Source: Diplonema japonicum | Taxonomy: Eukaryota > Protista > Euglenozoa: Diplonemea | Assembly: GCA_964019335.1 (NCBI GenBank) | Contig: OZ025675.1 | Span: 1 to 64,000, forward strand | Reading direction: 5' to 3' | Length of the DNA: 64,000 nt | Program-made: the position numbers and the translations under genes | Part shown: positions 17,660 through 39,482 of the stretch, piece by piece | Position numbering within the stretch: the first letter of the stretch is position 1 | Layout of the letters: each line of letters begins with the position of its first letter | The notes under the pieces: model-generated | What the model saw: the letters and a program-made list of their open reading frames with translations, nothing else | What the model was told of the DNA's origin: nothing | Database searches by the model: none

Positions 17660-17832
17660 TTATACAACCACTTCCTTCCACTCAACCGCCCCCGCTGCTG
17701 TGGAACTGCCTGCACCGAAAATGCTTGCTCCCCAACCGAACATCTGCACGATCAGCAAGAACACAACTATGAGGCCCACAAAGATCACTCCCACAAGGAT
17801 GATTACCCACATCCTCCACCTTTGGTTGGTTC
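17660..17832 (-). CDS. Terminal exon of astacin-mucin gene (GTNQRWRMWVIILVGVIFVGLIVVFLLIVQMFGWGASIFGAGSSTAAGAVEWKEVVV*)
   Basis: Preceded by T11-CATAACAG. A phase-1 join gives a clean TM helix and a tail matching gene 33827-38062. Not in the ORF track. Confidence 0.82.
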
Positions 17833-20800
17833 CTGTTATGAAAAAAAAAAAGTTTTATTTTTTAACCATCTACCAACGGACCATTTTTGCCCACCAGGGG
17901 GTAAATTTTCAAAACTTCAAAAAAAGCTTTTCTAGCGCAACGCCGGGGCTATATGCCCCCGGAAATGCCTCCAGATGTCCCAATTCTAGAGAGAGGGTGC
18001 CCACAGCAGGGCCCACCCTCACAACATTGTCAAAAATATCGTTCCCGAAGTGCCCGAGAGGGGGTACAAAAAACAAGTCAAAAAGAATCGACTGTAAAAT
18101 TCTGTAAAAAGCTATCTCGCGGTTTGTACGTGCCCCAGGGCTGGGGTACTTCTTTTTTGACCCCGAGAGCTATTGCGGTGTTGTAAATATGCACTTGGTG
18201 GGGAGCGGGACGTCCTTTCCGGCTTTCATTCTCTTTTGGCCGACACGTCAAATTTGACTTCACCAGAACATCCAACGTCGACAGAAAGCGCACAGGCTTG
18301 ATGTCATGCCACGTTGTGGTGCAAAGGATGCTCACGTGCTGGTGGAACTGGGTGTCCCCACAGGATGCGTGTCCTTGGGCTTGCGGCCTCGCTTCTTTGG
18401 GGCATCCGTGATCTCCGGGAGGCCTTTGCGATAGGTAGAAGTCAGCACGCTTGTTTGTTTCGCTGTGGAAACACAGATTTCCCAGAATAGTCAAAAAGCG
18501 GTTCTTGACATGACGGTGGCGTACCCAGGGGTGTGGTTGAGAGACGTGGAGCCAGTGCGCCAGTAGTCAGAATAATCTGGCTTGATATCCAAGTCGCAAA
18601 GAAGCAGCATTGAGATCCAGGGAAACACCTTTTTTAGCCGCATTTGCCACATTGTTCGAAATTATGACCCAAATAACGTTTGGGACGAGCATTTGGGAGA
18701 ATATATGGAATGGCGTTGAGCCTCTGATGTCGAAACAGGGTCCACAAGGATTCCGATCTTCACGAAACCGGATGCCTTCCAACCGCTCCGGCTTTGCCGT
18801 CCAATCACCCTGCTGTGACTAGGAATCGGTCAAATTCGTATCAGAATCACTGTCCGTACCAAAATTGCATAATAGGGATGAGCCATCAGTGCTACCATCA
18901 CTCATAATGTCCTCTTCCGGCCTCTTTCTGGGCACCCTTTTTTGAAGTGATTTTTAAGGGTAAATTTGGGCTGGCGTTTTTTTTTCTTTTTTCTTTTTCT
19001 TGTTAAGTTAGGGCAGCATTTAGTTTATATTTTTCATATTTTCCGCGCAGGACCCCGGATGCGAGAAGTGGCCGGGCTGTATTGCATTGAAAGCCCTTTG
19101 CGCAAAAGATTTTTTTTCAAATCGTCTATAAAGACGCTCGTTGGTAGATGGTTAAGTTCTAAAAAAAGAACACTGAAAAAGAGTCGGCTGATTGTTTGTG
19201 CAAGCCGGAAGGTGTGTTCCATCCTTTTTGTGGACCTGCTTGAGGCAGGCTTCGTGCCCAGGCAACCACATCTTGGGCAACGGAACCCCGTTTTGTGCTC
19301 CCGGTCGCAGCCGGCAGCACAGTCCGGGTCCGCCGGCGCCGTGGGGGCCCCCTCCGGGTATAGTATAACCGACAACTCCGACGGGTCGATGTCTGCGCAA
19401 GCCATATTTTTGTTTGTGCAAGCCGTTTTCGCCTACAGTAGGGATAAACGGACAAGCTGCCTCTACTCTTTTTTGCAATAACAATTCTTTTCAAAAATTT
19501 GTTTACTTGTTCCAGCAAAATAAAACAAAAATATCCAGTGGGCGTAAGGGAAAATGCCCGCTCTGGGTGGCTTAGACCATGGCCGGGGCAGGACTGCCAG
19601 GACAGCTGAACCAAAAGAGGAACTGTTGCCGAAAGAAATATGGAGAAGACGGGTTTGCAAAAACCGGTCGTACATAGAAATTATTCTGCTTAGTAAAAGT
19701 GACAAAAAATCAGACGTTGAAATTAAAGACAAAACAACCTTCGTTTCACAGTATTAAGAAAATAAACAAAGCATGCCTGGTGCGGGTGTTGCTGGTGCCG
19801 ACGTGTCAGGAGCACCTGTCACAGGTGACTGCGTCGGGAGCACGGGCACAGAAGTAGAGGGAACGGGAATGGGTGCAAGAGTGGGCATTGGTGTGACCAA
19901 CGTTGGTACGGCAGTAGTGGGAGCCTGCGTAGATGCTGTTGGCTGTGAGGTAGAAAGAGTGGGGACAGGGGAAGGAAGAGGAGTTTGAAGCGTTGGCACT
20001 GGCGTGGGTAACGGTGTTGGAACGGGGGTAGGTAGTGCTGTAGGGATAAAGGTTGAGGGTGCTGATGTTGCAGGTGCAAAAGTGCTAGGCGCCTTCGTGG
20101 GGGGAGAAGAAGTTGCAGGTGCTTGTGTATCAGGTGCTGCTGTGTCAGGTGCTACGGTTGGCATGGCAGTATCAGGGGCAGGAGTCGGTGGTGCTGTTGT
20201 GGTGGGTGCCGTTGTGTCTGGTGCTGTTGTGGTGGGTGCCGTAGTGTCTGGTGCTGTTGTGGTGGGCGCTGTGGTGTCAGGTGCTGGCGTATCAGGCGCT
20301 GTGGTTTGTACTTCATCTTTTTACACTGACTTAGACCAGGGATCAAGCCGGAATACATGAAGCTAAGAAGGCACAACATACCTACTGTGTCTGGTGCTAC
20401 GGTTGGCAAAGCCGTGGGGGGAGAAGAAGTTGCAGGTGCTTGTGTATCAGGTGCTGCTGTGTCTGGTGCTACGGTTGGCATGGCAGTATCAGGGGCAGGA
20501 GTCGGTGGTGCTGCTGTTGTGCCTGGGGTCAAGGTATCAGGGGAAGGAGTCGCAGGTGCCGAAGTGTCAGGTGCAGCGGTGTCAGGTGCCGAAGTGCCAG
20601 GTGTAGTGGTGTCAGGTGCTGTTGTGGAAGGAGCTGCTGAAGTGCCCGGTGCTAGCGTATCGGGTGCTGTGTTGCTTAATCTTTCAAATTGCAATACCTG
20701 GGGTGTCGGGTGCAGGAGTATCTGGTGCGGATGTGTCAGGTGCCGAAGTGTCAGGTGCTGTTGTGGAAGGAGCTGCTGAAGTGCCCGGTGCTAGCGTATC

Positions 20801-23800
20801 GGGAACTGTGTTGTTGGCCTAATCTTTCAAATTGCAATACCTGAGGTGTCAGGTGCAGGAGTATCTGGTGCGGATGTGTCAGGTGCAGTGGTGTCAGGTG
20901 CCGAAGTGTCAGGTGCAATGGTGTCAGGTGACGAAGTGTCAGGTGCAGTGGTGTCAGGTGTCGAAGTGTCAGGTGCTGTTGTGGAAGGAGCTGCTGAAGT
21001 GCCCGGTGCTAGCGTATCAGGAACTGTGTTGTTGGCCTAATCTTTCAAATTGCAATACCTGAGGTGTCAGGTGCAGGAGTATCTGGTACGGATGTGTCAG
21101 GTGCAGTGGTGTCAGGTGCCGAAGTGTCAGGTGCTGTTGTGGAAGGAGCTGCTGAAGTGCCCGGTGCTAGCGTATCGGGAACTGTGTTGTTGGCTTAATC
21201 TTTCAAATTGCAATACCTGAGGTGTCAGGTGCAGGAGTATCTGGTGCGGATGTGTCAGGCGCTGATGTATCAGGTGCAGTGGTGTCAGGTGCAGCCGTAT
21301 CAGGTGCGGGAGTATCAGGCGCTGGTGTGTCAGGCACGGGTGTGTCAGGTACTGGCGTATCAGGTGCAGCCGTATCAGGTGCTGGTGTGTCTGGTGCAGC
21401 CGTATCAGGTGTGGGAGTATCAGGCGCTGGTGTGTCAGGTACGGGTGTGTCAGGTGCAGCCGTATCAGGTGCTGGTGTGTCAGGTGCTGGCGTATCAGGT
21501 GCTGGTGTGTCAGGGGCCACAGTTGGCACGGCTGTCTCGGGAGCAGGTGTGTCAGGTGCTGCTGTGGTGCCTGGCATCAAAGTATCGGGAGCTGTTGTGT
21601 TTTTTTCTTTTAACAAATGTACTTTTTCTTTTACATATAACAAATGCATTTTAGCTAGTTGTATTTAACCCTGAGGGGAAGTCTTCACCCGCGCTTAACC
21701 CTCAAATATGCAAAACCTAAAGAAAGCCGGAGACCAAAACCGATTTAAACAAATGAATTGTCGAGCCTTCTGCGATCCAATTCCCCTAGCTTTAAAACTG
21801 GCGTTTAGGCGGTTGGGCACAATCGTCATTCGTGCTGCCAAGGTATAGTTATTACGAATCACTTTGGCAACAAGGCATCTACCTCTTTAAGCGCCATGAT
21901 GACTGGAACGTAAATCACACCTGAAGTATGAGGTGCAAGTGTGTCGGGAGCCTGAGTAGGAGGGGGTTGCGTGTCAGGGGCAGGGGTTGCAGGAGATTGT
22001 GTAACCGGAGCAGGAGTAGAAGGGGGTTGTGTGTCTGGAGCAGGAGTTGGAGGAGATTGCGTATCCGGGGGAAGGGTATCCGGTGCCTGCGTGTCTGGAG
22101 GAAGAGTTTGAGGGGACTCCGTGTCTGGCACTTGAGTATCCGGTGCTTGCGTGTCTGGAACGAGGGTCGGAGGAGACCCCGTATCTGGCACCTGAGTTAG
22201 AGGAGATTGCGTAGCAAGTTCTGGTGCTTGAGTAACAGGTGCTTGCGTGTTTGGAGCAGGAGTTGGAGGAGACTCTGTATCCGGTGCCTGTGTAACAGGT
22301 GCTTGTGTATCCGGAGGAGGAGTATCTGGTGCCTGCGTGTCTGGAGCAAGTGTAAGAGGTGCTGGGGTTGGTGGTGGAACTGTATTCCCAGGACTCAAGG
22401 TATCAGGCACAACTGTGTTAGGAGCTTGCGTATCGGGAGGAGTATCCGGTGCCCGCGTGTCTGGAGCAAGAGTTTGAGGGGACCCAGTGCCAGGTGCCTG
22501 AGTATCAGGTGCTTGTGTACCCGGAACAGGAGTATCGGGTGCTTGCGTGTCTGGAGCAAGAGTCTGAGGAGGCTCTGTATCCGGGGCTGGAGTATCGGGT
22601 GCCAGCGTGTCTGGAGCAAGAGTTTGAGGGGACTCTGTGTCAGGTGCCTGAGTTAGAGGAGGTTGTGTATCCGGGGCTGGAGTATCAGGTGTCTGAGTAA
22701 CAGGTGCTTGCGTGTCTGGAGCAAGTGTAAGAGGTGCTGGGGTTGGTGGTGGAACTGTATTCCCAGGACTCAAGGTATCAGGCACAACTGTGTTCGGAGC
22801 TTGCGTATCCGGAGGAGGAGTATCCGGAGCTTGTGTATCCGGAACAGGAGTATCAGGTGCCTGCGTGTCTGGAGCAAGAGTTTGAGGGGACTCTGTGTCA
22901 GGTGCCTGAGTTAGAGGAGGTTGTGTATCTGGGGCTGGAGTATCAGGTGGTTGAGTAACAGGTGCCTGCGTGTCTGGAGCAGGAGTTGGAGGAGACTGCG
23001 TATCCGGAGGAAGTGTATCAGGTGCTTGTGTATCTGGAACAGGAGTATCGGGTGCTTGCGTGTCTGGAGCAAGAGTCTGTGGAGGTTCTGTATCCGGGGC
23101 TGGAGTATCCGGTGCCTGCGTGTCTGGAGCAGGAGTTGGAGGAGACAGTGTATCCGGAGGAAAAGTATCAGGTGCTTGTGTATCCGGAACAGGAGTATCG
23201 GGTGCCAGCGTGTCTGGAGCAAGAGTCTGAAGAGGCTCTGTATCCGGGGCTGGAGTATCAGGTGCCTGCGTGTCTGGAGCAAGAGTTTGAGGGGGCTCTG
23301 TGTCAGGTGCCTGAGTTAGAGGAGGTTGTGTATCTGGGGCTGGAGTATCAGGTGGTTGAGTAACAGGTGCCTGCGTGTCTGGAGCAGGAGTTGGAGGAGA
23401 CTGCGTATCGGGAGGAGGAGTATCAGGTGCTTGTGTATCTGGAACAGGAGTATCGGGTGCCAGCGTGTCCGGAGCAAGAGTTTGAGGGGACTCTGTGCCA
23501 GGTGCCTGAGTATTCGGTGCTTGTGTATCTGGAACAGGAGTATCGGGTGCCTGCGTGTCTGGAGCAAGAGTTTGAGGGGACTCTGTGTCAGGTGCCTGAG
23601 TTAGAGGAGGTTGTGTATCTGGGGCTGGAGTATCAGGTGGTTGAGTAACAGGTGCCTGCGTGTCTGGAGCAGGAGTTGGAGGAGACTGCGTATCCGGAGG
23701 AGGAGTATCAGGTGCTTGTGTATCTGGAACAGGAGTATCGGGTGCTTGCGTGTCTGGAGCAAGAGTCTGTGGAGGTTCTGTATCCGGGGCTGGAGTATCA

Positions 23801-26800
23801 GGTGCCTGCGTGTCTGGAGCAAGAGTTTGAGGGGACTCCGTGTCAGGTGCCTGAGTTAGAGGAGGTTGTGTATCCGGGGCTGGAGTTTCTGGTGCTTGAG
23901 TATCAGGTGCCTGCGTGTCTGGAGCAAGAGTTGGAGGAGACTGCGTATCCGGAGGAGGAGTATCAGGTGCTTGTGTGTCTGGAACAGGTGTCAGAGGGGA
24001 CTGTGTATCCGGAGATAACGTGTTTGGCACTGTTTTTGTTTTTCGTTCTTAGTTACCTCACCAAACCAAACAGCAAACATTGGAATTAAAATGAAAGCTA
24101 AAATAGGTGGGTCAGTTATTCTTTTTCTCTCATCTCCACTACAGATTAGGGTTTTCCATCTACGCAGGTGCTTTGGTCTCTCTTATCGCCTACCCCGCCG
24201 ATCCTCAGGAAGTGGCCTATTCCCACGTCACAAAGAGCTGGCCACGGGCTTTCCAGTTGTCAATAGCCTTTGTCCTGTGCAAATGGTCAGCAGAGACGAG
24301 CTTGCGCACAATGGCCTTTGATACTTGGTTGACCTTTGCCCTTCATATACATTATGTCGAGACAGTACTCCGTGCACTTGTTTAATTAAAATACCAAAAA
24401 GCATGGGGAAAAGCATTTAGAACTTGGTAAGACTAGAGACAAGGTACAGGCCATGATTCATATTAATAAAGTAGAAAAGCCGAACATACCTAGCGTGTCT
24501 GGTGCTGTCGTGTCAGGTGCTGTCGTATCAGGTGCAGTAGTGTCAGGTGCAAGTGTGTCAGGTGCAGTAGTGTCAGGCGCAGTAGTGTCAGGTGCTGTCG
24601 TATCAGGTGCAAGTGTGTCAGGTGCAGTAGTGTCAGGTGCAGTAGTGTCAGGTGCTGTAGTGTCAGGTGCAGTAGTGTCAGGTGCAGTAGTGTCAGGTGC
24701 AGTCGTGTCAGGTGCAGTAGTGTCAGGCGCAGTAGTGTCAGGTGCTGTCGTATCAGGTGCAAGTGTGTCAGGTGCAGTCGTTTCAGGTGCAGTAGTGTCA
24801 GGTGCAGTAGTGTCAGGTGCTGTAGTGTCAGGTGCTGTTGTATCAGGTGCAGTCGTGTCAGGTGCTGTCGTATCAGGTGCGGGTGTGTCAGGTGCTGTCG
24901 TATCAGGTGCAGTAGTGTCGGGTGCAGTCGTATCAGGTGCGGGTGTGTCAGGTGCAGTAGTGTCAGGTGCAGTCGTGTCAGGTGCTGTCGTATCAGGTGC
25001 AGTAGTGTCAGGTGCAGTAGTGTCAGGTGCTGTCGTATCAGGTGCAGTAGTGTCAGGTGCTGTTGTATCAGGTGCAGTCGTGTCAGGTGCAGTAGTGTCA
25101 GGTGCTGTCGTATCAGGTGCGGGTGTGTCAGGTGCTGTCGTATCAGGTGCAGTCGTATCAGGTGCGGGTGTGTCAGGTGCAGTAGTGTCAGGTGCTGTTG
25201 TATCAGGTGCAGTCGTGTCAGGTGCTGTCGTATCAGGTGCAAGTGTGTCAGGTGCAGTCGTTTCAGGTGCAGTAGTGTCAGGTGCAGTAGTGTCAGGTGC
25301 TGTAGTGTCAGGTGCTGTTGTATCAGGTGCAGTCGTGTCAGGTGCTGTCGTATCAGGTGCGGGTGTGTCAGGTGCTGTCGTATCAGGTGCAGTAGTGTCG
25401 GGTGCAGTCGTATCAGGTGCGGGTGTGTCAGGTGCAGTAGTGTCAGGTGCAGTCGTGTCAGGTGCTGTCGTATCAGGTGCAGTAGTGTCAGGTGCAGTAG
25501 TGTCAGGTGCTGTCGTATCAGGTGCAGTAGTGTCAGGTGCTGTTGTATCAGGTGCAGTCGTGTCAGGTGCAGTAGTGTCAGGTGCTGTCGTATCAGGTGC
25601 GGGTGTGTCAGGTGCTGTCGTATCAGGTGCAGTCGTATCAGGTGCGGGTGTGTCAGGTGCAGTAGTGTCAGGTGCTGTTGTATCAGGTGCAGTCGTGTCA
25701 GGTGCTGTCGTATCAGGTGCAAGTGTGTCAGGTGCTGTCGTGTCAGGTGCAGGTGTGTCAGGTGCAGTCGTGTCAGGTGCGGGTGTGTCAGGTGCTGTCG
25801 TATCAGGTGCAGTCGTGTCAGGTGCGAGTGTGTCAGGTGCAGGTGTATCGGGTGCAGAGGTATCAGGGGCAGTCGTTGAGGCTGCGCCACAAGTTGTGAA
25901 CGAGCCACTTAAAAGTATGTACTGACCATATGAAGTGGGACGATAACACACCTTGTACGTTGTAGCACCTGCTAAAGAGGATAAAGTACCCGAACTCCAC
26001 TCTGTAGCAGTCCCGACCACCAGAAGTGACCCCACTGAAGTAGAGCAAGCACTAAGCCCAGAGCACTGTGTTTCAGCGTTGGTGCAATCTGTTGCAGAAG
26101 AGGGGACGATAGCCACACGGTCCGTAGTCGCAAGGGTGTCCGAACCGGGATAGAAGTGAAAGACAGGGGCATCGGTGCCAGGACGGGGGCACGAAGGATT
26201 TACATCAAAAGCAGGGTCACGCCTCTCGCAAGGAAGGAGGATAGAGTCAACAAAGCAACCGGTAGAAGTACCCAGGGTGGACAGTGTGACGGAACCAATA
26301 CTGCCAAAGCCAGATGGAATGGCAGCGGTGATGCCCGTTGCAGTGTTGTCGATGCTGACAGACAGTGTGTTGGCAGACCAGTCGAGAGCAAGTTCCACGT
26401 GGTGCCAGGTATCTGTTGACACAGAACCGAAGAACTGGATCGCAGTGTCATCTGTACGCACAACAAATGAAGTCCCGATAGCGATCCAGAATTCGATGGT
26501 TTTGCCATCGCCTACCAGTGTCATTTTAAGCTGCGAATTCTCGGAACCGACCCTGCCGTAATAACTGCATGACGTCGGTTTGATACCGCCTGCTGGGATG
26601 CTGTAGATGAACCCGTACATGGTCCATGTGAAGGACCCAGCGCCCTCCCTTTTAGTGGCCGTAGTGACTTCGAAGACAGTCGAGCTTACATCAGAAGTGC
26701 TGTCAAATGGTACATCGAGACCGGAGGTACACTCGCCAGGGATGGAAAATGATGTCTCTTCTGGGGAGTACGACGGAGTGAGGCCACTCGTGAACATGCT

Positions 26801-28864
26801 CCCAGTGAAGGTCATGCTGACGGTTTCCGAGCCAAGGATGCTGAAGGTTGGTGCAGGGTTGAGAGGGCCAATGGTAAGCACGGCACCTGAGATTGTCATC
26901 TTCGAAGTGTCCAGCATCGTCGATTCCAGCGCATTCCAACCAGTCGTAGAAGGGAAATCTGCAACCATGATATCAAGAATCGCCTGCTTGTTAGCCGTAG
27001 TGTCAACCCACTCATCGTAATCGCCCACTAACGTGAGGGTCAGTGTTGCACCACCAGCACGAAGAGTGTCCTGAGTGATGCCCTCCACCAATGGACCAGA
27101 GGGCACCACATAGCTCGTGCACCACAAATGGAACTCGTCGTAATAACCAGTCTTAAAGAAGACGGCGTAGTTCAACCCAGTGGGGCACGTTGATCGAAAG
27201 GCGATTCCTGTCGCCTCTTGCTTTCCGTCAACAAGCAAGTCTAACGTCTGTGCTGCCCAGTCGACACGCAGGTCAAAGAAGTAGTACTGCTTTAAGTTGC
27301 TTGACGTGCCGATTCCATTGAAATTCACGTGCCACGCCCCGTTGTTGATCCCTACAATGAAACAGGTGTTTCCTGAGGTAGTGTCGTAGAAGTATATGTT
27401 GGGCGAAGATGTTGGGTCATCGAACCGTGACATGTACCACGTGATACGCTTCGTCATGCTCTTGTCTAGAAGCGTGAGCTGCCCCTGACCAGCAGCAGAT
27501 GCGTCAGCGGTGTCGCCTACTCTGAGCGACGCGCCGCCCTTCGCAGAAAACGACACGTCTATAGCAGCGGAGTTCAAGGCGTTCACGGATCCAGTATCCT
27601 CATCGAAAGAGAATAAGTAATTCTGGGGGCAATTCGCAAAGCCAAGACACTCAAGCCCTCCGTACGCCCCGTTGCAGGTGCATGGAGCAAGCGGATTGGT
27701 GACGCATGTCCCTCGCCCCGAGCAGACCTTTGGGTCGTTGGAGGCCACGCCAAAGCAGACAGCGGTTGACGATGCGACAGTGACGTCGATAGAGCACGTC
27801 ACGCTGGTACCGTCGCTGCCCGTAAAGGTAGTGCCAATGGTGTAGTCATTGCCAGCCTCGCTAGCAGTCGGGGTGAACGTTGCTTGTGCATTCCCAACCT
27901 GTCCAATGTTGGTACCCGAAGCCTTTGAGTACGACATAGTGGCAACCGGGGCTGTGGTCACAGCGTAAGTCACTGTAACTGTCTTCCCCGACGCGAAGAT
28001 TGAGTTGAATTCCGTGAGGTATCCTACCGAGTGGGGGATGACATGCCGTGTGGTCGACGTGCGGGATGACCTGCAGATAGGCGCATCGTAGTTATCAGAG
28101 CAGGTGTTGTACATGAAGTGTACAGTGTCGATGTCGCCGTCGGAGAGGCCGGTTCGCTGCCCGATAGGGACAGGGGACACAATGGTGGGAAGATTGCCAA
28201 TCGCAAAACCGTTGGCCCCATAGTGCATGATGCTTCCATAGTCATACGACCCGATATCCCTACCGTTGGCTCCGATCTTGTCGAAGTTGTGTTCCATCCC
28301 CATCTCGATCTGCGTCGTGTCGACGTACACGAAGCTGTCTCGGTCATTCCGCGCCTGCTCGTGCGACAGACCGACACTGTGCCCGATCTCATGGATCACT
28401 GCACCCAGCCCGCAGAACTGTTGTAAGTTAATCTGGTTGATACCAGAAAAGCTCTTGCCTACTGGTGAGTTGCATGCACTAACATCGGAAATGAAGTACA
28501 GGTAAGGTATTGCGCAGCTTGCCTTCGTTGTGCACCTTGTGAACCGAAGGCACGTGTGTGTTTCCCAGTGTGCAATTGCTGCCGCTATCCTGCTATCGTC
28601 GGCAGTCAAGAAATACGGCGCCGGGTTCCCTGCGTTCGACTCACTCGTCTCGATGAAGTAGTTGAGCTTGCCTTGCGGCCACAGGAACGAGGTGCTTGTA
28701 AACCACGTCGCCCCTAGCGTCTGCACCGTCCGTGCGCCCTCGTCATACACCTCTTGAATGTCACTGTGCACTATCCGGTACTTATAGTGCATCCCCTCAG
28801 TCAGGTCCTGCCCGGTAACCGCTGACAAGCATACTAGCAGCCCAACTGCTGCTGACACCCTCAT
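17660..28864 (-). CDS. 9-exon type I membrane astacin (M12A) metalloprotease: signal, astacin, EGF-like, ConA/LamG-like regions, ~1700-aa TxAPD mucin stalk, TM, WKEVVV tail (2750 aa)
   Basis: HEIGHSVGLSHEQ and Met-turn SIMHY. Exons: 24490-28864, 21921-24029, 21217-21591, 21059-21181, 20841-21023, 20698-20805, 20382-20666, 19777-20298, 17660-17832. All 8 introns are phase 1, all internal exons are multiples of 3, and the total is 8253 nt. Confidence 0.85.
17862..19155 (-). mobile_element. Internally deleted piggyBac with both TIRs and TTAA TSDs
   Basis: TTAA|CCATCTACCAACG (from 17866) ... CGTTGGTAGATGG|TTAA (to 19151). Acidic N-terminal remnant MSDGSTDG at ~18905, plus ILGNLCF and WHDIKPVRFLST. 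Confidence 0.92.
19176..19474. mobile_element. Long form of the dispersed hairpin element with a 218-bp internal module bounded by 16-bp direct repeats
   Basis: AAAAAGAGTCGG...CTACTCTTTTTT ends. TTGTTTGTGCAAGCCG at 19192-19207 and 19410-19425. The insert encodes a frameshifted Cys/His cluster. Confidence 0.65.
20667..21216 (-). other. Four tandemly duplicated micro-introns (21182-21216, 21024-21058, 20806-20840: 35 nt; 20667-20697: 31 nt)
   Basis: Each reads GTATTGCAATTTGAAAGATTA(A/G)GC[CAAC]AACACAG and has an in-frame TGA if unspliced. Removing them restores the PDT repeat frame. Confidence 0.9.
24735..25735 (-). repeat. 15-nt (PDTTA) minisatellite with a perfect 480-nt higher-order duplication
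   Basis: 24735-25255 is identical to 25215-25735, including the variant PETTA unit. Confidence 0.9.
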
Positions 28865-29534: not shown

Positions 29535-30329
29535 TCACAGTCGCAGTCGGGAAAGTGCTTCATCAAGAACTTCCACACAAACGCTGTGCCCGGACCTCGT
29601 AGCCGAGCAAACGGCCTTGCTGATCTCATCTTCCGAATGTCGATGAGATAAGAGCAGACGGAGACACTCCACATGCCCGTTCCTCGCTGCACAACATAGA
29701 GGTGAACCATGTTTCGTATCAATGAAGTTACGCTGCTCAGAATCTTCGTCGAAACCGGGGTTAAGGAGGGAGAGGAGATGCGACACGCACTGTGTATTCC
29801 CTTTTCGGCAGGCGTGAAATAAAGCAAAGGAGACATCAAGACTGCTCAGGAAGTTCTCAGATAGGTATCGCATACAACTATCGAAGCCGAGCATCGAAGC
29901 GTAACAGAAAACAGAGCTTAGTACTGGCATGTTGTCGCACTTCCCCACGCACCTCATGTCTACAAGTGCAGTGTAGTACTTACGATCATGGCGGAGTGCG
30001 CAGTCTCGGTGATTTTCCTTCGCGCAGTGTTGCATGTCCCACAGCACGTTTGTCTCGTCCTTCCCTGCGTACCCAGCGTCCTCTAGCCGCATCAGAGCTT
30101 TCTCCTTCTCAGCCACAACCACAACAATCCCAGACTGGTCTTGCAATGGGTAATCCCACACTGCCTTCCCTTCCTCCATTGCTTCTCCTTCAAACTCTAA
30201 CATGAAGTTACTACTAACAAGCCCGCCCTCCTTCGCCACCAGACCTTTCAGCATATCCACACTGGCACTGCCTTCTAGCTCTACCGTCAGTGTCTGACCA
30301 AGTGCCGACACTTGCAATGTTAACGCCAT
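29535..30329 (-). CDS. Ubiquitin-like domain + ankyrin repeat protein
   Basis: N-terminal Ubl-like LQV..LGQTLTVEL...VDMLK...LEFEG. Ankyrin motifs ALFHACRKGN, SPLCCAARNGHVECLRLLL and ATRSGH. Confidence 0.85.
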   Translation of the reverse strand: MALTLQVSALGQTLTVELEGSASVDMLKGLVAKEGGLVSSNFMLEFEGEAMEEGKAVWDYPLQDQSGIVVVVAEKEKALMRLEDAGYAGKDETNVLWDMQHCAKENHRDCALRHDRKYYTALVDMRCVGKCDNMPVLSSVFCYASMLGFDSCMRYLSENFLSSLDVSFALFHACRKGNTQCVSHLLSLLNPGFDEDSEQRNFIDTKHGSPLCCAARNGHVECLRLLLSHRHSEDEISKAVCSATRSGHSVCVEVLDEALSRLRL

Positions 30330-31575
30330 GGCTTGGGTATGTTCTTTCAGAAGCCTCAGAAAGATATGTGAACAGGTTTGTGTTCCGATACCTGTAGATC
30401 ATTGCATCCAAAACACGAGCTAAAAGAGAGTCAAACAGAGAAGATTAATAAGCACAGCTGGCAACAGGTGCTGAAAGAAAGGGGTGGACACCACGAACGC
30501 GGTGCCAAGATCGTTTTGAGGGAACACGCGTTCTTCCAAGAAACACGTGAAAACCGTACTGCACGGCTGCACGGCTGAGGGGTATCTTCTGCTGTACCGT
30601 AACAAAGGTCCTCATCTTGGACATCACTTGTTGTCTCCCTGCACTTAAATCAAGATCTGTGCAACCACTAACGAAACAGTAAGTACCATAGCAAACACCA
30701 CCTGCATCCATGCTGTGCAGGCAAGCCGAATCTATCACAGATCGTTAAGATATTTTACTACCACTTACCGTGAAGACCCCATTTGCATGTCACCTTTTCA
30801 CAAGCGTTGGACGTCAACACCCACATGACCAGTGACCAGTGCTCTGCATGGTTTGTTGTATCCCTTGATATGGACTGGGTAGAGAAAAAGAATATATATA
30901 AAGGAAAGACGGAACTTAACACTTAAATGGCTTGCGCTGCTTGCGGCTTGTCCTGCTTCCAGCTTTGGGTAAGTTTCTCTTGTGGCACCTGTGTGAGGTA
31001 CCGTGGCTGATGGGGCCGTAATCAAGACCTTATAAGTCCTGTAAAAGAAAAAATGAAACAACAAAAAGTGTTTTCTTCCGTGAGGCTCCACAGCGGATGT
31101 GTCCGAATCATAAAGAAAACCTCTTCGGTGGCCTGTGGCAGGAGCTTGTGTTCGCCAGCTACCCCGAGAAGAAATCAGTATTCCTTTAACTGCAGAACGG
31201 ACGGTTTTTGCGTTCGGGGCTTGTCATTCGTTTGACATTTGTCCGTTAGCATCTGCAGAACTTCATTCAAACACTGGAAAAGAGGAAAAGATGGCAAAGA
31301 GGATATTCATAAAGTATAAGGGCCACATCGTCCATGTTGAGGATGCACAAATGAGATAAGGGGAAGGGAATGACAAGAAACATTATAAGTGTATCTTCAC
31401 ACTTCTGAGCGATTGCCTCGCCTCGGGACTCGAAATTCTCCAGAGACGAGCCACCGCAAGGCAAGGTTAAATGTCCTAAAAAGACCTCTTCCAAATGATT
31501 GTTCAACAAAAAAGTGGACGAGAAATGAAAACGTGCTGGGAAAACTTAAAAAAGATGCTGCTAACGAAAAACGCA

Positions 31576-32678
31576 CTACTGAATGGTGTCATCTTCCTGC
31601 TTACACTGCTCCTCCAATACTGGTGCTTGGTATTCTAAAACCTCAGGCTGGGCAGGATCCTGTTGAAGAACCTGCTGCTGCTGAGGGACCTGCTGTTGTA
31701 GAAGGACTTGCTGCTGCTGAGGAACCTGCTGCTGAGGGAGCTGCTGTTGTAGAAGGACCTGCTGCTGCTGAGGAACCTGCTGCTGAGGGACCTGCTGTTG
31801 TAGATGGGCCTGCTGCTGCTGCTGCTGAGGGACCTGCTGCTGGGGAATCTGCTGTTGTAGAAGGACCTGCTGCTGAGGGACCTGCTGTTGCTGAAGAACC
31901 TGCTGAGGGATCTGCTGCATGACCTGCTGCTGAACAGACTGAGGAACCAGCTGTTGAGATTGAGCAGGGGTAACGTACATCTGCTGACCGGGCTGTTGGT
32001 ACACTTGCTGCACGTACTGCGGCTGCTGCTGCTGAGCATACTGTACGGGGGCCAGCTGCGGAGCAGGATGTTGCATGGACTGCATCGGTACCTGCATATA
32101 TCTGCTGTTTGCCTGACCCCCAATCCAGGTCTGGCTTGCCGCTGCAGCTAAGCAGCCAACCAAAACACTGACCACCACCACCAAGGCAAAGGACCAACTG
32201 ATATCGAAATAACTGTCAAGACTGAAAGTGGAACCAAAGCAGCTCACCTGTGTAAGTTATAGACTACGCTGGAACATACCTCACGCTTGAACAACGACAC
32301 CATCAAGATCCATGTGAGGGTTGTAAAGAGGCAGCTCAACCCGTACGACAGATACAGCACCTTCTTGCTGTCACGAGAAACATTGACAATGCTTGAAATC
32401 AAAGCCACGGTGAGAGGCACCATCCCAAAGGCAGCGAGTATTGCCATAGAATAGAGATGCCCACTAATAGCGTCTGGTTCGCAGGATGATGGAATGTCTT
32501 TAACCCTGTCATAAAGGCTGGGGCAGGACGAACCTTGCACCTCGCTCTTTGAGACAGTATAAATCCCGTAATGACACCCTTGGCCTGTCATGAAGCCGTC
32601 CTGAGTAATTGCTACAAAGTACATGACCCACACAAGCAAGGTGCACCCCGCAAGGCTGTGCTTCAAAGTCAGATTCAT
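31576..32678 (-). CDS. Amastin/claudin-like tetraspan membrane protein with Q-rich repeat tail, 2 exons (356 aa)
   Basis: Exons 32280-32678 and 31576-32247, joined by the 32-nt phase-0 intron GTATGT...TTACACAG (32248-32279). Four TM segments, loop-1 cysteines, LTWILMVSLF..C...SWSFALVV, and QQQVPQQQ repeats. Confidence 0.82.
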
Positions 32679-33826
32679 CTTTTAGTTTGTCCAGAAAGAG
32701 ATAAAAAAAAGCCTGTGTAGAATGGCATCGTGCGTATGCTGGTTCTGAAAAAAAAGAAGTATAAAAGAACAGGAAAACTCTAAACCACAAGGCGTCCACA
32801 GCGAAGCGATCACCCAGCTAGTATGGTGCTTCATGAAGAGTCGAACGGTAAAAAAGAATAAGAAACTAACATATGAGTAAAAAGAGGCCGTTTAAAAAAA
32901 AAAGAGGTCGTTTACGACGCTCTCGATGGCTGGGGGATCGCAATGTTTAAAAAAAAAAAAAAAAACCACATTTCTTCTTTTTGCAAGAGCGGGAGCACGC
33001 AGACACCGCTCTTTTCTTTTGTCATTATCCTTCTTTTGCTGATTGATGTTGCTTGATTCACTTTCTTTTTCTTTTTTTCTTTTTCTGATTTTCACATTTG
33101 AAGGAAGCAATCCTTTACGTGACTCGAACGAACGGGGAGGAAAGAAACTGACTATGCGTCACGCGTCCTTATAATGCAAAACTGACGGAAAAGAAAATAA
33201 TTGAAATAAATTATCTCTGCTCCCGTTCAAGAGGCGAAAATGAACAAAAAAGGAAAGTCCGGGGGTGAAAGTTTATCGCCCTCACACCCACTTCGCAGAT
33301 GTCTGGAAGTGGAAAAAAAGAAATAGTAAAAAAAAAAAAAAGCAAAAGGAAACAAGGTTTCCATTCTCTAATAGACAAAAAAAGGGGGGAAGGACCTTAC
33401 ACAATCACCCGAGGGAGAAGAAATACAAAGAAATAGTCCAATTTTACCAATAGAGAAGGAGTAAATTTCAAAAAGTCTTAGCTGCTCGTCTCGATAGGGA
33501 TTCCTTGAGGGGGCAGCCAACGTACCTTTGAGGCTTGCAAACAGAAACGAAGCAGGAACGAACGTAGGGTGGAGGTGAGGATATAGAGTGAGGGTGAAAA
33601 GTGAACAGCTACCTGCTTCCTTAGCTGCTTTATATAAATCTTGCCCAGCTTTCGTAGAGCTACTAATGCTTGATCAGCCTGAGCGTCTCGAGCATCTAGC
33701 TAAACAGAACGCGTGCAAGATACGAATCGCAAAGAAAGAAAAGAAGAAAAAGAAACCTTACAGAGGGCGATCTCACAAAATGCTGAAGGAGATTCGTATC
33801 TCATCCAGGAGCGGCCCAAGCCAGCA

Positions 33827-36800
33827 TCACACCACCACCTCCACCCACGAGGCGGCACCCTGACCTACGAGTCCCAGCACAGCGACCCCTACCATTCCCA
33901 GCACGAGCACAGTCGTAAAAATAGTGCCGCTTAAGATGTATGGCCACAAGTAGTGCTTCACCACCCTCCCACTCGCGTTCTCCTCATATAAGAAAGACCA
34001 CCTGGGGAATCGCGTCTCCACAAACGGTGTCCTCGTCGGGATAGCCGTCGCTCGGGGTCCCCCTGTAGGGCTGCCTGTTGGCTGAGCTGTATCAGTGGGA
34101 ACTGGGGTAGGTATAGGCACAGGTTCCGATGTGCTAAGCCGCGGTGTTTCTGTCTGCTCTGGGGACACGGTCGGCCTGGGTGTTATCGCTACAGTTGGCA
34201 CCGGGGTTGGCAGCGGTGTCGGTGCAAGAGGTGGGAAGGTGGGTGCTGCAGTTGTGGCTGGCCGCATCGTTGGGGGGAACGTTGGAGTTGGTGTAAGAGG
34301 GGCGGATGAACTCGGTGGGGCTGGGGCATTGGTATCAGGTGCGGGAGTAACAGGCGCGGATGTATCAGGTACAGATGTGCCAGGTGTACCTGGTGCGGTC
34401 GTAGGAGGTTCGGGAGTATCAGGTGCAGGAGTAATAGGTATACCTGGTACAGATGTGCCAGGTGTACCTGGTGCGGTCGTAGGAGGTTCGGGAGTATCAG
34501 GTGCAGGAGTAATAGGTATACCTGGTACAGTGGTGTCAGGTGCTGGTGTAAAAGGTGCGGGAGTAGTAGGTGCCGGTGTATCAGGTGCTGGTGTAGAAGG
34601 TGCTGGTGTAGAAGGTGCGGGAGTAATAGGTATACCTGGTACAGTGGTATCAGGAGCGGGTGTATCAGGTGCTGGTGTGTCAGGAGCGGGTGTATCAGGT
34701 GCTGGTGTAGAAGGTGCTGGTGTATCAGGTGCTGTCGTATCAGGTGCTGGTGTAGAAGGTGCTGGTGTAGAAGACGCGGGAGTAATAGGTATACCTGGTA
34801 CAGTGGTACCAGGAGCGGGTGTGTCAGGTGCGATCGTATCAGGTGCTGGTGTATCAGGTGCCAGTGTATCAGGTGCCGGTGTATCAGGTGCTGGTGTATC
34901 AGGTGCTGGTGTATCAGGTGCTGGTGTATCAGGTGCCGGTGTATCAGGTGCTGGTGTATCAGGTGCCGGTGTATCAGGTGCTGGTGTATCAGGTGCTGGT
35001 GTATCAGGTGCCGGTGTATCAGGTGCTGGTGTATCAGGTGCTGGTGTATCAGGTGCTGTCGTATCAGGTGCTGGTGTAGAAGGTGCTGGTGTAGAAGGCG
35101 CGGGAGTAATAGGTATACCTGGTACAGTGGTATCAGGAGCGGGTGTGTCAGGTGCAATCGTATCAGGTGCTGGTGTATCAGGTGCTAGTGTATCAGGTGC
35201 CGGTGTATCAGGTGCTAGTGTATCAGGTGCCGGTGTATCAGGTGCTGGTGTATCAGGTGCTGGTGTAGAAGGTGCTGGTGTAGAAGGCGCGGGAGTAATA
35301 GGTATACCTGGTACAGTGGTATCAGGAGCGGGTGTGTCAGGTGCAATCGTATCAGGTGCTGGTGTATCAGGTGCTAGTGTATCAGGTGCTGGTGTATCAG
35401 GTGCTGTCGTATCAGGTGCTGGTGTATCAGGTGCTGGTGTATCAGGTGCAGGAGTATCGGGTGCAACAGTATCAGGAGCATCTGTTGGAACAGCAGTTGG
35501 CACGGCAGTGGGTGGTGCTACAGTCGGGACTGCCGTTGGCTCCGCAGTTGGAGGAGCATCCGTGACACTGCAAGGCTTGTCTGGGGACAGAAAGTAGTTT
35601 CTCTCGTACTCCCCCATCCGTCTGACCCAGTTGCAAGTCCCTTCGCACCGCGCTGAGCACCTGTCGTTTCCTATGGAGTGGGTGTACGAGGTTTTCCGAT
35701 TGAAGCAGCGGACTAAAGGGTCTGCTTGGATGTGCGTGTAGTATGTGCAGCCTGACCTTGGTGTGGCAATCCCGCACTGGCCGTCAGAGCTTCGGCGTTG
35801 GAAGGCGATGCAGTTAGAGTCCGAATCGCACCTAGCAGAGCAGGACTGGACGCTATAAGGCTTCAGAGAAGTATCTGCTATGTAGCCGTGGATGCAATTC
35901 CCAGGGCCCCTGCACCATCCAGTGTTCCCGTTGGCTGCCACTATTTCAGAATATCCAGATGGAACCTCTGTTGCAAGGGCGAGCTGGACAAACGCAGGGA
36001 GGCCGAAAGAAGCCATGTTATCAGCAGCGCACCGTAGTCTGTAGTCCTCAGCATCAGTTATCGACCACCCCTCAGGCCGCTTCGTGATCATCATACCTGC
36101 GACTCCGCCGACAACAGAAGCCGTGAAGTGCACTTTCGCTTTGATCTCCGCCACGTTGTTTGGCTTCGCCACATTAGTCCTCTGCAGCGCACAGTAAATG
36201 CTAGTTCCTTCAGGGATCCCTGCTGTCTGCACGAAAGTCGGCACGCCACTGTATCCACCGACCTTGGGCCACCTGTCCACAATCTCCATCATTGGAGCAT
36301 CCTTCTTGTACGTAGCCATCCCGTACTCCTCATAACATGACTCGAACGCACACCCTGCTACTTTGTTCACGTTCACCAACGTTGCGCATGCTGAGTACAG
36401 CTCGCACACACGGTCAGTGTGCCGAAAGGTGAATACCACGCACGATGTATCATCGCTGCATTTGCTAGCACAGCAATCGTGGTCTCCCACGGGGGAGGCA
36501 CTAATTTGCGTGCCCCCCGAGCACATCTTGTACCCAAAGGGACGTGCCTGGAAAGTGTACCCTGACACAATGGGTGCCATCCCAGCACGGGAGCACAGCC
36601 ACATATCGTAGTATCTTGTCGCTTTGCGTGTCCCCGGGTCATGATGGATCATGATGCAGTGATGGAAGTACTTATCCGTGGGGTCCTTCTTCATGAAAAC
36701 AAATCCAACGCACAGCACATCCATATCGCAGATGGCCTGGCACTCTTCAGCATTACTGTACGGCCCAAGAGGCACGTCGGGTAGGTTAGGGCGCATGGCA

Positions 36801-38062
36801 TGGAGGTACCCCTTCTCCGTCCACGCACCTCTGTTCGCGTCGTCGAAGGGCGCCATGTTCGGCAGGCGTACCCAACGATCGCAGCGTGGCCGCTCCTTCC
36901 CTGTAGGCGGCATGCCATCGGGTGTCGGACACACAGCGGGACCCACCACACGCACTCCATAGTGCGCCTTTTGTAGCACTTGCGACTCGATCCAACAAGA
37001 CTTCGCAGTAAAGCCACCTGTTGGGTACGCCCAAGTCCAGTACCTGCATGGAGGGCTCCCTGTGTAGTCCCTGCACAACTGTGCGCAGGCCGCAGCGCTA
37101 TTCACACCATTCCAAGTGCCAAGAACCACGTCATCCGGGCCAGGAAGGTCATGACCGTAAGTGATACCCCCCTCCGCACACGGGAGGTTGTATTCACTCT
37201 CATAGTCTGAAATTGGGTGGCGTGGGCCTATCTGCTGTGCCTGATCAGAAAATGACTTCTCTACAGTGCCCTTGGCCGCCACTACTACCCAGTAGTGCGG
37301 GTTGCACGGGTCATTGGCTTGAGTTGTCTTATCCCTGCGGTCCAAGGTAATGGGACACCGAACATTCGGAGGTGTCCCCATTGCGATGGTGAAGGTGATG
37401 TCGCAACCTGTCGCAGGGAGGCTCTTGAAGAGCCTTGCGTCGTCTACAAACTTGAACTGTTCCCAGGAGACGGGGTTCTTCAAGCCGCAGGACGGCACCT
37501 TACGTACGGTCTTCGCGAAGCCCCAGTATATGTTGTATTGCGTTATGTCAGCCTCGTCGGCAGCGCGGACTACTGTCGCCTCCCCGCCGAAGGAGAACCT
37601 CTGTGGATCGCGGTCCGTGAATATGATGCCTTGAGCGTGGTGCCTTGGTGCAGTGCTCGGTGCTTCGCAGCAAGTGAAGTCATTGCAAGGAAAGTAAGGG
37701 CATGAGATGGAGCTAGCGGTACTCTTTAGCGTCCAGCCTAGCTTTGTGCAGGTATAGGCACTGCAGATCCCTTCAGCACAACACTGAGCGTCGGTGCAAG
37801 ACCCTGCATACTCATCTCCTTGTGTGTAGTCTGCACAGATGATGCCAGCTGAGTCGTGCCGCAGGACTCTCCCCGAAGAGCAAACATGCGGCGGCATATC
37901 AGCAGGCGGAAGCTGATTGACAAGATACATGTACGAAGTCTGCCCGTCATCAGGCCGCCTGTTACAGTATGGCCACTTCGGGTACGCCCCCAAGTTCTTG
38001 GGCTGCTTCCACTGCGTGCAGTCGGCCAATATCAGCGCTGAATACAAGATGTGCACACTCAT
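33827..38062 (-). CDS. Type I membrane protein with Cys-rich and multiple PAN/apple domains, PDTPA mucin stalk, TM, WVEVVV tail
   Basis: PAN-type patterns (SAAACAQLC...CRYWTW...C, AEECQAICD...CVGF, CASKC..D.SC.VF, CSARCDSDSNCIAF); repeats at ~34100-35550; C-terminal hydrophobic helix. The start could have an upstream exon. Confidence 0.85.
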   Translation of the reverse strand: MSVHILYSALILADCTQWKQPKNLGAYPKWPYCNRRPDDGQTSYMYLVNQLPPADMPPHVCSSGRVLRHDSAGIICADYTQGDEYAGSCTDAQCCAEGICSAYTCTKLGWTLKSTASSISCPYFPCNDFTCCEAPSTAPRHHAQGIIFTDRDPQRFSFGGEATVVRAADEADITQYNIYWGFAKTVRKVPSCGLKNPVSWEQFKFVDDARLFKSLPATGCDITFTIAMGTPPNVRCPITLDRRDKTTQANDPCNPHYWVVVAAKGTVEKSFSDQAQQIGPRHPISDYESEYNLPCAEGGITYGHDLPGPDDVVLGTWNGVNSAAACAQLCRDYTGSPPCRYWTWAYPTGGFTAKSCWIESQVLQKAHYGVRVVGPAVCPTPDGMPPTGKERPRCDRWVRLPNMAPFDDANRGAWTEKGYLHAMRPNLPDVPLGPYSNAEECQAICDMDVLCVGFVFMKKDPTDKYFHHCIMIHHDPGTRKATRYYDMWLCSRAGMAPIVSGYTFQARPFGYKMCSGGTQISASPVGDHDCCASKCSDDTSCVVFTFRHTDRVCELYSACATLVNVNKVAGCAFESCYEEYGMATYKKDAPMMEIVDRWPKVGGYSGVPTFVQTAGIPEGTSIYCALQRTNVAKPNNVAEIKAKVHFTASVVGGVAGMMITKRPEGWSITDAEDYRLRCAADNMASFGLPAFVQLALATEVPSGYSEIVAANGNTGWCRGPGNCIHGYIADTSLKPYSVQSCSARCDSDSNCIAFQRRSSDGQCGIATPRSGCTYYTHIQADPLVRCFNRKTSYTHSIGNDRCSARCEGTCNWVRRMGEYERNYFLSPDKPCSVTDAPPTAEPTAVPTVAPPTAVPTAVPTDAPDTVAPDTPAPDTPAPDTPAPDTTAPDTPAPDTLAPDTPAPDTIAPDTPAPDTTVPGIPITPAPSTPAPSTPAPDTPAPDTPAPDTLAPDTPAPDTLAPDTPAPDTIAPDTPAPDTTVPGIPITPAPSTPAPSTPAPDTTAPDTPAPDTPAPDTPAPDTPAPDTPAPDTPAPDTPAPDTPAPDTPAPDTPAPDTPAPDTPAPDTLAPDTPAPDTIAPDTPAPGTTVPGIPITPASSTPAPSTPAPDTTAPDTPAPSTPAPDTPAPDTPAPDTPAPDTTVPGIPITPAPSTPAPSTPAPDTPAPTTPAPFTPAPDTTVPGIPITPAPDTPEPPTTAPGTPGTSVPGIPITPAPDTPEPPTTAPGTPGTSVPDTSAPVTPAPDTNAPAPPSSSAPLTPTPTFPPTMRPATTAAPTFPPLAPTPLPTPVPTVAITPRPTVSPEQTETPRLSTSEPVPIPTPVPTDTAQPTGSPTGGPRATAIPTRTPFVETRFPRWSFLYEENASGRVVKHYLWPYILSGTIFTTVLVLGMVGVAVLGLVGQGAASWVEVVV

Positions 38063-38559
38063 TGACTACGTTTCTCCTGCACGTATGTCTCTGTTAACAG
38101 CTACCTGACTAGTACATGCCGTGGCGGGCAAAAAGTCCTGTTGGTAAGTAAGAAAGTAGGGAATATAAAACACTAAACACAGAAAACTCGGAATATTGAG
38201 TGATGAATAAAAAGCTCTCGAGACTCTCACCCAGTTGCCTGGGTACTCTGGACCGTGCAGGTGTTCTCTTACCACAAGCCTAGCTGGTTGTTTGGAACCT
38301 TAAGTGAATGGGCACGCGGATAACCCTTCGCTGGGGGCGGTCACAAAGGAAGCGATCTCAATTCTAAAAAGCGGAAGTCACCTGCAGAAGCAGCAAACCC
38401 GCTGACATCATTATTCTGTTTTACCAGGTGCTGCTCAAGCTTCACGTAAAAATTGCGTACCTCCTGAGACCCACTGGGAACTGGCTGTGGTTGAAACAGT
38501 GCTCTGATGGGCCGACTCGTTCGTTGTGCAAGGATCCTCAAGATCTCTGACCCAGTTGC

Positions 38560-38960
38560 CAACACGCTGTACTCGCTTCACAAGAACATCAGGCCACAGC
38601 CAAGAAAAACTCTGCAAAAGGTTGCATTGTCCTTATAGTAGCTGAATGCAAACTGTGGACATTATTGTCGTGAGATGTGCACCCCGAAGCGTTGTACAAG
38701 ACCGCCAACAAGATCCATGTGAGGCACGAGAAGACACCAGAGTGCGCCACTGTCGCAGCAATATTCATCTTACCGTGAATACGTGCTCGTAGCGCCGCAT
38801 CCCTGCTAGGGGCTCATGGTGTCTTCTTTCAGATTTGCTATCTATAGCCTGTGGTGCGATGTTTGTCTTTATTGAGCTCCATGAACATTGGTGCCCTGGA
38901 TGAAAGATTCTATCGGCTGAGTGATAAGGCGCACAGCAGCCATGACGAACGCTGCGGAGG
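38560..38960 (-). pseudogene. Decayed paralog of the amastin-like gene
   Basis: 38679-38738 translates to GVFSCLTWILLAVLYNASGC, compared with CLFTTLTWILMVSLFKREVSC. The 16-mer CAAGATCCATGTGAGG is shared with ~32304. Flanks are broken by stops and frameshifts. Confidence 0.55.

Positions 38961-39447: not shown

Positions 39448-39482
<35 letters not shown>

Follow-up and report, generated by a model that had tools for sequence, protein, structure and literature searches.

A C-terminal module shared by five mucin-stalked genes of Diplonema japonicum, with a candidate C-terminal-valine sorting signal

Diplonemids belong to the most numerous and varied groups of marine heterotrophic protists. To our knowledge, their cell surface and the sorting of their membrane proteins have hardly been described. 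The first 64,000 nucleotides (nt) of contig OZ025675.1 of Diplonema japonicum (assembly GCA_964019335.1), here called the window, raise a question about both. Two genes in the window encode predicted surface proteins with different heads, one an astacin metalloprotease and the other a PAN/apple protein, and each head sits on a mucin-like stalk of TxAPD repeats. An original prediction made from the sequence had both proteins ending, beyond a transmembrane segment (TM), in W-x-EVVV, and placed them in a duplicated cassette with an amastin-like tetraspan gene. Does the common ending reflect a duplicated locus, a shared signal or simple descent? The reading that we favor, and consider rather probable, is that the window holds two independent type I mucin-like surface-protein genes on the same strand, both belonging to a five-gene family that shares a C-terminal module with a C-terminal-valine export or PDZ-docking tail. 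The description of the five-gene family is far more secure than the function of the tail.

The astacin-mucin gene, like all genes of the region, lies on the minus strand, and its tail is encoded by a separate terminal exon (Table 1). The open reading frame (ORF) 17660-17812(-) translates as MWVIILVGVIFVGLIVVFLLIVQMFGWGASIFGAGSSTAAGAVEWKEVVV up to the stop codon, and in the exon a juxtamembrane TNQRWR leads into a TM (MWVIILVGVIFVGLIVVFLLIV), after which a Gly/Ala/Ser linker runs to the terminal AVEWKEVVV. Evidence that this exon is joined to the rest of the gene comes from contigs assembled from four public runs (X2, X4, X5, and X6) and aligned to 17500-20300. For X2, X4, and X6, which derive from three studies, one contig spans 17500-17831 and continues directly with 19776-20125, and depth over the unique part of the intervening intron (19568-19755) is zero. 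X5 contigs cross both exon/intron borders and X5 therefore holds the unspliced genomic form, and we take X2, X4, and X6 to be RNA because the intron is missing from their contigs. The join is in frame (APATPAPG/TNQRWRMWVII), and the spliced gene ends in a TM followed by GAVEWKEVVV, as originally read.

This last intron has a GC..AG boundary rather than GT..AG (AG/GCATGC at the donor and T10CATAACAG/G at the acceptor), with a T10 tract and ACAG in front of the acceptor on the minus strand. It also contains a dispersed repeat of ~1.26 kb (17900-19155), of which the genome has 535 or more candidate copies; the 40 copies that were scored are 88 to 96% identical, and contig depth over the repeat is ~1000-fold over the single-copy level. 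The repeat accounts for the length of the intron here, as compared with ~40 nt for the intron of matching position and phase in a second astacin-mucin gene, on contig C77, which has a related tail exon. A complete Trinity transcript of D. japonicum in EukProt (P0001, EP01064; 1,357 amino acids [aa]) contains a head, a TxAPD stalk, a TM and the end GTANWDDVVV, and it is 100% identical to the C77 gene over residues 1-1008 and 1331-1357, a match that also assigns the genome to D. japonicum. By joining head, stalk, TM and tail in one transcript, P0001 lends independent support to the exon chain of the window gene.

At the other end of that chain, the product of ORF 24458-28864(-) has a signal peptide, the catalytic domain of an astacin (M12A) and ~800 further residues of large, Cys-containing ectodomain, after which comes the first TxAPD (TTAPD/TPAPD) array. 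The head matches Pfam Astacin (PF01400) with 131.7 bits against a cut-off of 22.5 (E = 3.2e-38), and both features expected of an M12A member, the zinc motif HExxHxxGxxHE (HEIGHSVGLSHE) and the Met-turn SIMHY, can be read in the ORF. The metalloprotease head looks active. Tandem Repeats Finder located the array, of 15/30-nt period, at 24495-25876, which bears out the stalk originally ascribed to this gene. The predicted donor of exon 1 is AG/GTATGT at 24490/24489, and the predicted first intron (24030-24489; 460 nt) has AAACAG at its 3' end (24030) and leaves the frame intact. The remaining stalk is read from segments rich in Pro, Thr, Ala and Asp (21859-24030, 21203-21649, 20152-20694, and 19754-20164) that are parted by GT..ACAG introns (GTATTGC...ACACAG), many only ~35 nt long; the last Pro/Thr-rich spacer includes PTPVPTPLPTPVPT. 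Within 20667-21216 whole exon-plus-intron units are repeated, with recurring micro-introns of ~35 nt of the form GTATTGCAATTTGAAAGATTA(A/G)GCC...ACACAG, in agreement with the period-139, -158, and -218 repeats reported by Tandem Repeats Finder.

The PAN-mucin gene is a single ORF, and its ending can be read directly. The protein has a signal-like N terminus, a Cys-rich PAN/apple head, a TxAPD (here TPAPD) array, a Pro/Thr-rich spacer, a juxtamembrane KHYLWPY and a TM, and it terminates in LVGQGAASWVEVVV (TM...QGAASWVEVVV; in a longer reading, YILSGTIFTTVLVLGMVGVAVLGLVGQGAASWVEVVV). That is the end originally described. Three stretches of the head match PAN_4 (PF14295) with 35.7 bits (cut-off, 27), and the head also matches PAN_1 (PF00024) with 33 bits (cut-off, 21.4), which places it in the PAN/apple group; the two heads are unrelated, as had been proposed. 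The stalk array, again of 15-nt period, occupies 34536-35464. The head and N terminus align with homologues from other diplonemids, and a C-terminal Val was present in none of the seven such PAN-head homologues that have TM tails. The lack of a valine tail in these homologues fits an exchange of heads or modules in the D. japonicum gene, and a head/tail swap at this gene is a plausible reading of the alignments.

What the two window genes share is a module composed of a Pro/Thr-rich stalk, a juxtamembrane segment that includes basic residues, a TM, an uncharged Gly/Ala linker and the terminus [W/F]-x-[D/E]-Φ-Φ-V-COOH, where Φ is a hydrophobic residue. Five genes in the 62.5-Mb genome carry it: the two astacins, the PAN gene, and two mucins on contig C7. 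A genome search with the astacin tail exon alone recovered only the C77 paralogue, and the last 139 residues of the PAN protein, used as a query, identified the two C7 genes. Both encode Thr-rich mucins with a signal peptide in which a Pfam search found no domain; a Pfam search with the 50-aa astacin tail returned nothing meaningful. The C7 mucin of 919 aa ends in KTYVWPFVIGGLVVIAGTVVVILGCVGAASAAGPSIFAPPVPMSPPGAPMFVETVV (...FVETVV), and that of 3,375 aa ends in a TM, ~60 Gly/Ala-rich residues and AADWVDVMV. The ending first seen on two proteins is in this way found in variant form (WDDVVV, FVETVV, and DWVDVMV) on three more. The C7 mucins form part of a tandem, same-strand run of three giant Thr-rich ORFs of 2,578, 3,375, and 919 aa at C7:664875-696251. 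Two of the three have the valine tail; the first ends in CLFRRVG with no TM in the same ORF, and a further exon is therefore possible.

The spread of the module is narrow. A profile built from the five C-terminal sequences (alignment A1) found exactly five loci in the genome, all of them the known ones, and among 1.84 billion representative proteins it found only P0001, from the same species, and one low-complexity match. Motif counts gave the same picture. W.EVVV-stop occurs four times in the genome and twice in a reversed control, with a TM in front of only the two window copies, and W.DVVV-stop occurs once, in the C77 gene; combined, these are five matches against four in the reversed controls, and three of the five are real tails. 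The shorter [DE]VVV-stop is not enriched genome-wide (120 matches, compared with 345 in the reversed control), and a TM with a Gly/Ala linker behind it was present at none of 40 further sites inspected. We therefore reject the idea of a widespread tag. The five-locus profile result and the lack of [DE]VVV-stop enrichment indicate that the tail marks a small lineage-specific family rather than serving as a proteome-wide tag; of the modular display system originally envisaged, the part that stands is one module on proteins with unrelated heads (two astacins, a PAN protein, and two mucins). The shared ending is real and exceeds chance. Separately, more than 20 dispersed genome sites carry the 15-mer GAGGTTGTCGTCTAG, which is therefore probably part of another repeat family.

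How the five tails resemble each other bears on whether the ending has any function at all. They terminate in EVVV, EVVV, DVVV, ETVV, and DVMV. In alignment A1 the linker ranges from 8 to ~60 residues and identity to the PAN module is 23 to 40%, and the last six positions keep [W/F]-x-[D/E]-[V/T]-[V/M]-V: the final Val is invariant, position -3 is always acidic and position -5 always aromatic. Apart from the K of WKEVVV, no Lys or Arg follows the TM in any of the five, and basic residues lie on the stalk side of it (QRWR, KHY, and KAKTY). The module of the PAN gene is closest to that of the 919-aa C7 mucin (BLASTP, 8e-10, with KxYxWP[YF] and the TM in common), and its similarity to the astacin module is weak (BLASTP, 1e-3). 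One explanation of this resemblance is that the ending has no signal function and descends, along with its TM exon, from a single mucin ancestor without having diverged so far. The confinement of the module to five genes of one species in the profile search and the 67% overall identity of the two astacin tail exons are what this explanation would lead one to expect. We nevertheless consider it unlikely: the aromatic-x-acidic-Φ-Φ-V ending has been kept while the TM and linker have drifted to the identities and lengths just given, and distant astacin homologues in Diplonema papillatum and other diplonemids end in D-Φ-Φ-V on tails that are otherwise unrelated.

These diplonemid astacin homologues are 40 to 77% identical to the window protein. 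Among those with TM tails, several have an acidic-Φ-Φ-V end: homologues from D. papillatum terminate in RFDVIV and TDLIV, and a genome protein from the European Nucleotide Archive in QADVAV. One more terminates in ERAIV; others have ordinary charged tails or hydrophobic ends resembling glycosylphosphatidylinositol (GPI) signals. Tail type thus varies among the homologues, from valine ends through charged tails to GPI-like ends. One deposited D. papillatum model (P0002, 'nas-39'; 1,934 aa) has two near-identical astacin-mucin heads in tandem and is probably two adjacent paralogues fused by gene prediction.

C-terminal valines have an established role in animals. They act as an endoplasmic reticulum (ER) export signal of type I proteins such as CD8, Kit ligand, HLA-F, and Cx36, and Val is the last residue of ~10% of human type I proteins (PMC11470877). 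The PDZ domains of GRASP55 and GRASP65 bind valine-ending cargo (D'Angelo 2009, as cited in PMC11470877), GRASP65 binding of proTGFα needs the last four residues (bioRxiv 10.64898/2026.01.12.698993), and ETVV, the end of one C7 mucin, is the PDZ-binding motif of MAS and Frizzled-4 (PMC4618059). No description of this tail motif was originally known, but signals of the same type have been described; the tail represents one form of them, and there is nothing surprising in kind about it. The five tails have the sequence attributes of these motifs, namely, a free Val preceded at position -2 by a residue of the class II (hydrophobic) or class I (Ser/Thr) type, and the D. japonicum genome contains two GRASP genes (GRASP55_65, PF04495), at C18:378987-379604 and C6:67949-68530. 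In view of the known valine signals and the two GRASP homologues, we consider export or PDZ docking the most likely function of the tail, at close to an even chance.

The route by which this might work can be outlined. Gene duplication would have given the two astacins, and fusion or exchange would have carried the module to other heads. With their signal peptide and one TM late in the sequence, the proteins are predicted to be of type I, and insertion driven by the signal peptide would leave a short tail facing the cytosol. There the C-terminal valine motif would act like the C-terminal-valine or PDZ-binding signals of animal type I proteins and might be recognized at ER exit by coat protein complex II (COPII), by PDZ domains of GRASP or another PDZ protein, or by both. 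Such recognition could promote delivery of the heavily glycosylated mucin proteins to the surface or hold them there.

Several points weigh against the reading of a five-gene family with an export or docking tail. The run type of X2, X4, and X6 is off record, and their reading as RNA depends on the absence of the intron from their contigs. Upstream of 20125 the contigs end within repeats, and the chain from the astacin head to that position was assembled from reading frame, splice sites and the paralogue transcript. Because the profile found no significant relative of the module outside the species among the 1.84 billion representatives, its conservation across genera rests on the last four residues only. 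Topology, receptor and trafficking role are all predictions, and the first two might be otherwise: the basic residues usual for stop transfer are missing behind the TM, with basic residues on the stalk side instead, and this, together with the odd Gly/Ala linker, leaves room for a different topology or a lineage-specific receptor. The likeness of the five tails could also come partly from shared descent.

Two other kinds of C-terminal anchor or signal were considered and rejected. A GPI anchor does not fit, the hydrophobic segment being followed by 14 to 60 more residues that end acidic-V-V-V; in the homologues P0008, P0012, P0053, and P0061, by contrast, a hydrophobic stretch forms the very end. 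A bacterial sortase-type C-terminal signal has its elements in a different order. Within the PDZ explanation, the tail could serve retention or positioning instead of export, docking the proteins on a PDZ scaffold at a membrane domain that requires protease and adhesin activity on its surface, the feeding apparatus or the flagellar pocket, for example. Ends of the forms V-x-V and T-x-V agree with PDZ ligands of class II and class I, respectively (PMC4618059), and a long flexible Gly/Ala linker would suit reach to a cortical scaffold, but GRASP is the sole candidate scaffold identified, and we regard retention as a decidedly unlikely role.

We return to the locus itself. The gene order originally proposed is correct: in the direction of transcription, an amastin relic is followed by the PAN-mucin gene, the amastin-like gene, a gene for a ubiquitin-like and ankyrin-repeat protein, and the astacin-mucin gene. 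From this order it had been argued that the region is a duplicated two-gene cassette of an amastin tetraspan and a mucin-stalked W.EVVV protein, with the tetraspan as a functional partner of the tagged proteins. An amastin-like gene does follow immediately after the PAN gene and precede the astacin gene, and the PAN gene in turn has a TM3-like fragment of that family upstream of it. The two halves, however, share no DNA similarity beyond the stalk repeats: when 33000-39600 was compared with 17000-32999 by blastn, all 188 matches (~73% identity) fell inside the PAN stalk array and none elsewhere. The ubiquitin-like/ankyrin gene is present in one half only, so that neither the similarity beyond repeats nor the collinearity expected of a segmental duplication was found, and the relic amounts to a single fragment of 29 residues. 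Nor do the other carriers of the tail have a tetraspan nearby. No amastin-like ORF occurs within ~20 kb of the C77 astacin-mucin gene or in 40 kb around the two C7 mucins. At least 11 amastin-like genes lie elsewhere in the genome, mostly in arrays on C59, C91, and C93, and none of the contigs that carry them yielded a tail-bearing gene in the module search. A duplicated cassette with a tetraspan partner is very improbable on these grounds. About as improbable, in our judgment, is the grander notion that the module, with its TM free of basic stop-transfer residues, its uncharged Gly/Ala linker and its aromatic-x-acidic-V-V-V-COOH end, is a portable, diplonemid-specific surface-sorting tag. A dedicated receptor, possibly with the adjacent amastin-like tetraspan as cofactor, would then direct giant enzymes and adhesins on mucin stalks to one particular domain of the surface. 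Nothing was found to link the ubiquitin-like/ankyrin gene, located between the tetraspan and astacin genes, to the mucin module, and both it and the tetraspan gene are ordinary neighbors and not parts of a cassette.

The tetraspan gene itself has two exons. The first (32280-32678) encodes TM1, a Cys-containing loop, TM2, and TM3, the second (31576-32247) encodes TM4 and a long Gln-rich tail, and between them is a micro-intron of 32 nt (32248-32279, GTATGT..ACACAG). The tail comprises ~170 residues with QQQVPQQQ repeats (31576-32100) and is lacking in the paralogues. The product has the four TMs and Cys loop of an amastin, the first loop reading GCHYGIYTV...SSC...SSC, and it does not match what we take to be the classical loop signature of kinetoplastid amastins. 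No match to Pfam Amastin (PF07344) was obtained when the two exons were searched singly. The label is better supported through the relatives of the gene: at least 11 paralogues (E values from 4e-19 to 7, those of 4e-19 to 6e-13 supporting the homology), making a family of at least 12 genes. Two paralogues, L014 with 28.3 bits and L019 with 29.2, exceed the 27.2-bit threshold of Pfam Amastin, and others fall just under it. The top match in a protein atlas is an 'Amastin-like protein' cluster of Euglenozoa, and the transcript-derived homologues P0069 and P0070 carry PF07344. The name amastin therefore holds for the window gene by way of paralogues above the threshold, and not by a Pfam match of its own. 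Amastin is regarded as ancestral to Euglenozoa (PMC6366073), and the presence of an amastin-like family in a diplonemid is thus expected. Besides a single gene on C78, the paralogues lie mostly in tandem arrays (C59:138700-163411 and 279309-279707, C91:99765-101881, and C93:79799-86926), and some of the C91 genes have in-frame stops that may represent introns or pseudogenes.

A hidden Markov model (HMM) of this family, run against the six-frame translation of the window, recovered the two tetraspan exons and then the fragment upstream of the PAN gene (E = 5.4e-5; next match, E = 0.4). The match is restricted to TM3 (profile positions 110-138, with 12 of 29 residues identical by tblastn). An amastin relic had been placed at 38560-38960, and of this region only the fragment aligns to the family, over TM3 alone; it is probably a decayed paralogue. 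Upstream of the fragment, ORF 38869-39165 contains a TM and a C-x-C-G-V-W-Y-V loop that recalls the amastin-like family without statistical support.

Table 1. Features of the analyzed region, with coordinates in the window
Feature	Position	Strand	Properties	Evidence
Astacin-mucin, terminal exon	17660..17832	-		Sequence, spliced contigs, 67% identical paralogous exon C77:150518-150664
Astacin-mucin, last intron	17833..19776	-	1,944 nt, GC..AG, phase 1	Contigs that skip or hold the intron
Astacin-mucin, stalk exons	19777..24029	-		Sequence and reading frames
Astacin-mucin, exon 1	24490..28864	-		ORF reading, Pfam, tandem-repeat and donor-site evidence
Ubiquitin-like and ankyrin-repeat gene	29535..30329	-		Pfam ubiquitin 1.7e-7, Ank_2 2.1e-22
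Amastin-like tetraspan gene	31576..32678	-		Sequence, paralogues, family profile
PAN-mucin gene	33827..38062	-	Single ORF, 1,411 aa	ORF reading, Pfam, Tandem Repeats Finder, homologue alignment
Amastin-like TM3 fragment	38592..38813	-	Contains SGVFSCLTWILLAVLY	Family HMM, tblastn

Five mucin-stalked genes, encoding proteases, a PAN adhesin-like protein and mucins without a recognized head domain, all with one short candidate C-terminal signal, provide a testable handle on the diplonemid surface. If the tail acts like the C-terminal-valine motifs of animals, recognition at ER export and by GRASP would extend to the Euglenozoa, and the tail might be usable for surface-display constructs in Diplonema. 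The amastin-like arrays join the inventory of diplonemid genes, and the idea of a cassette with a tetraspan partner is corrected.

Each part of these proteins has a counterpart in a known system. The membrane-anchored astacins meprin α and β and the D. papillatum proteins annotated as 'nas-39 / SpAN / nematocyst expressed protein 6' likewise have HExxHxxGxxHE and a Met-turn, and they share with the window gene the succession of catalytic domain, ectodomains, stalk and single C-terminal TM; the window gene differs from them in its stalk, a mucin array of TxAPD repeats that is very long and interrupted by micro-introns. In trypanosomatid mucins and MASP and in animal membrane mucins, a Pro/Thr tandem-repeat stalk similarly presents a globular head, and fast-evolving repeat arrays are likewise common to otherwise unrelated genes. 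Compared with the trypanosomatid proteins, those described here are anchored by a TM with a valine tail and not by GPI, and they are five genes without a large expansion. The neighboring tetraspan family resembles the amastins (PF07344) of Euglenozoa in its four TMs, Cys-containing first loop and tandem multigene arrays, whereas the window copy falls below Pfam significance and stands apart by its 32-nt intron and its long C-terminal tail rich in Gln. The closest counterparts of the tail are the valine signals of animal type I and multi-pass membrane proteins (CD8α, Kit ligand, HLA-F, proTGFα, Frizzled-4, MAS, and Cx36). These signals depend on the COPII component Sec24 and are ligands for the PDZ domains of GRASP55/65, of which D. 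japonicum also has homologues. The diplonemid tails differ from them in the conserved aromatic residue at -5, the triple-valine end, the uncharged Gly/Ala linker without basic residues, and a function that is predicted. Like them, they have a free Val on a short tail behind the TM, and one family member has an -ETVV end identical to that of Frizzled-4 and MAS, the others having hydrophobic residues at -2 and 0 and an acidic residue at -3.

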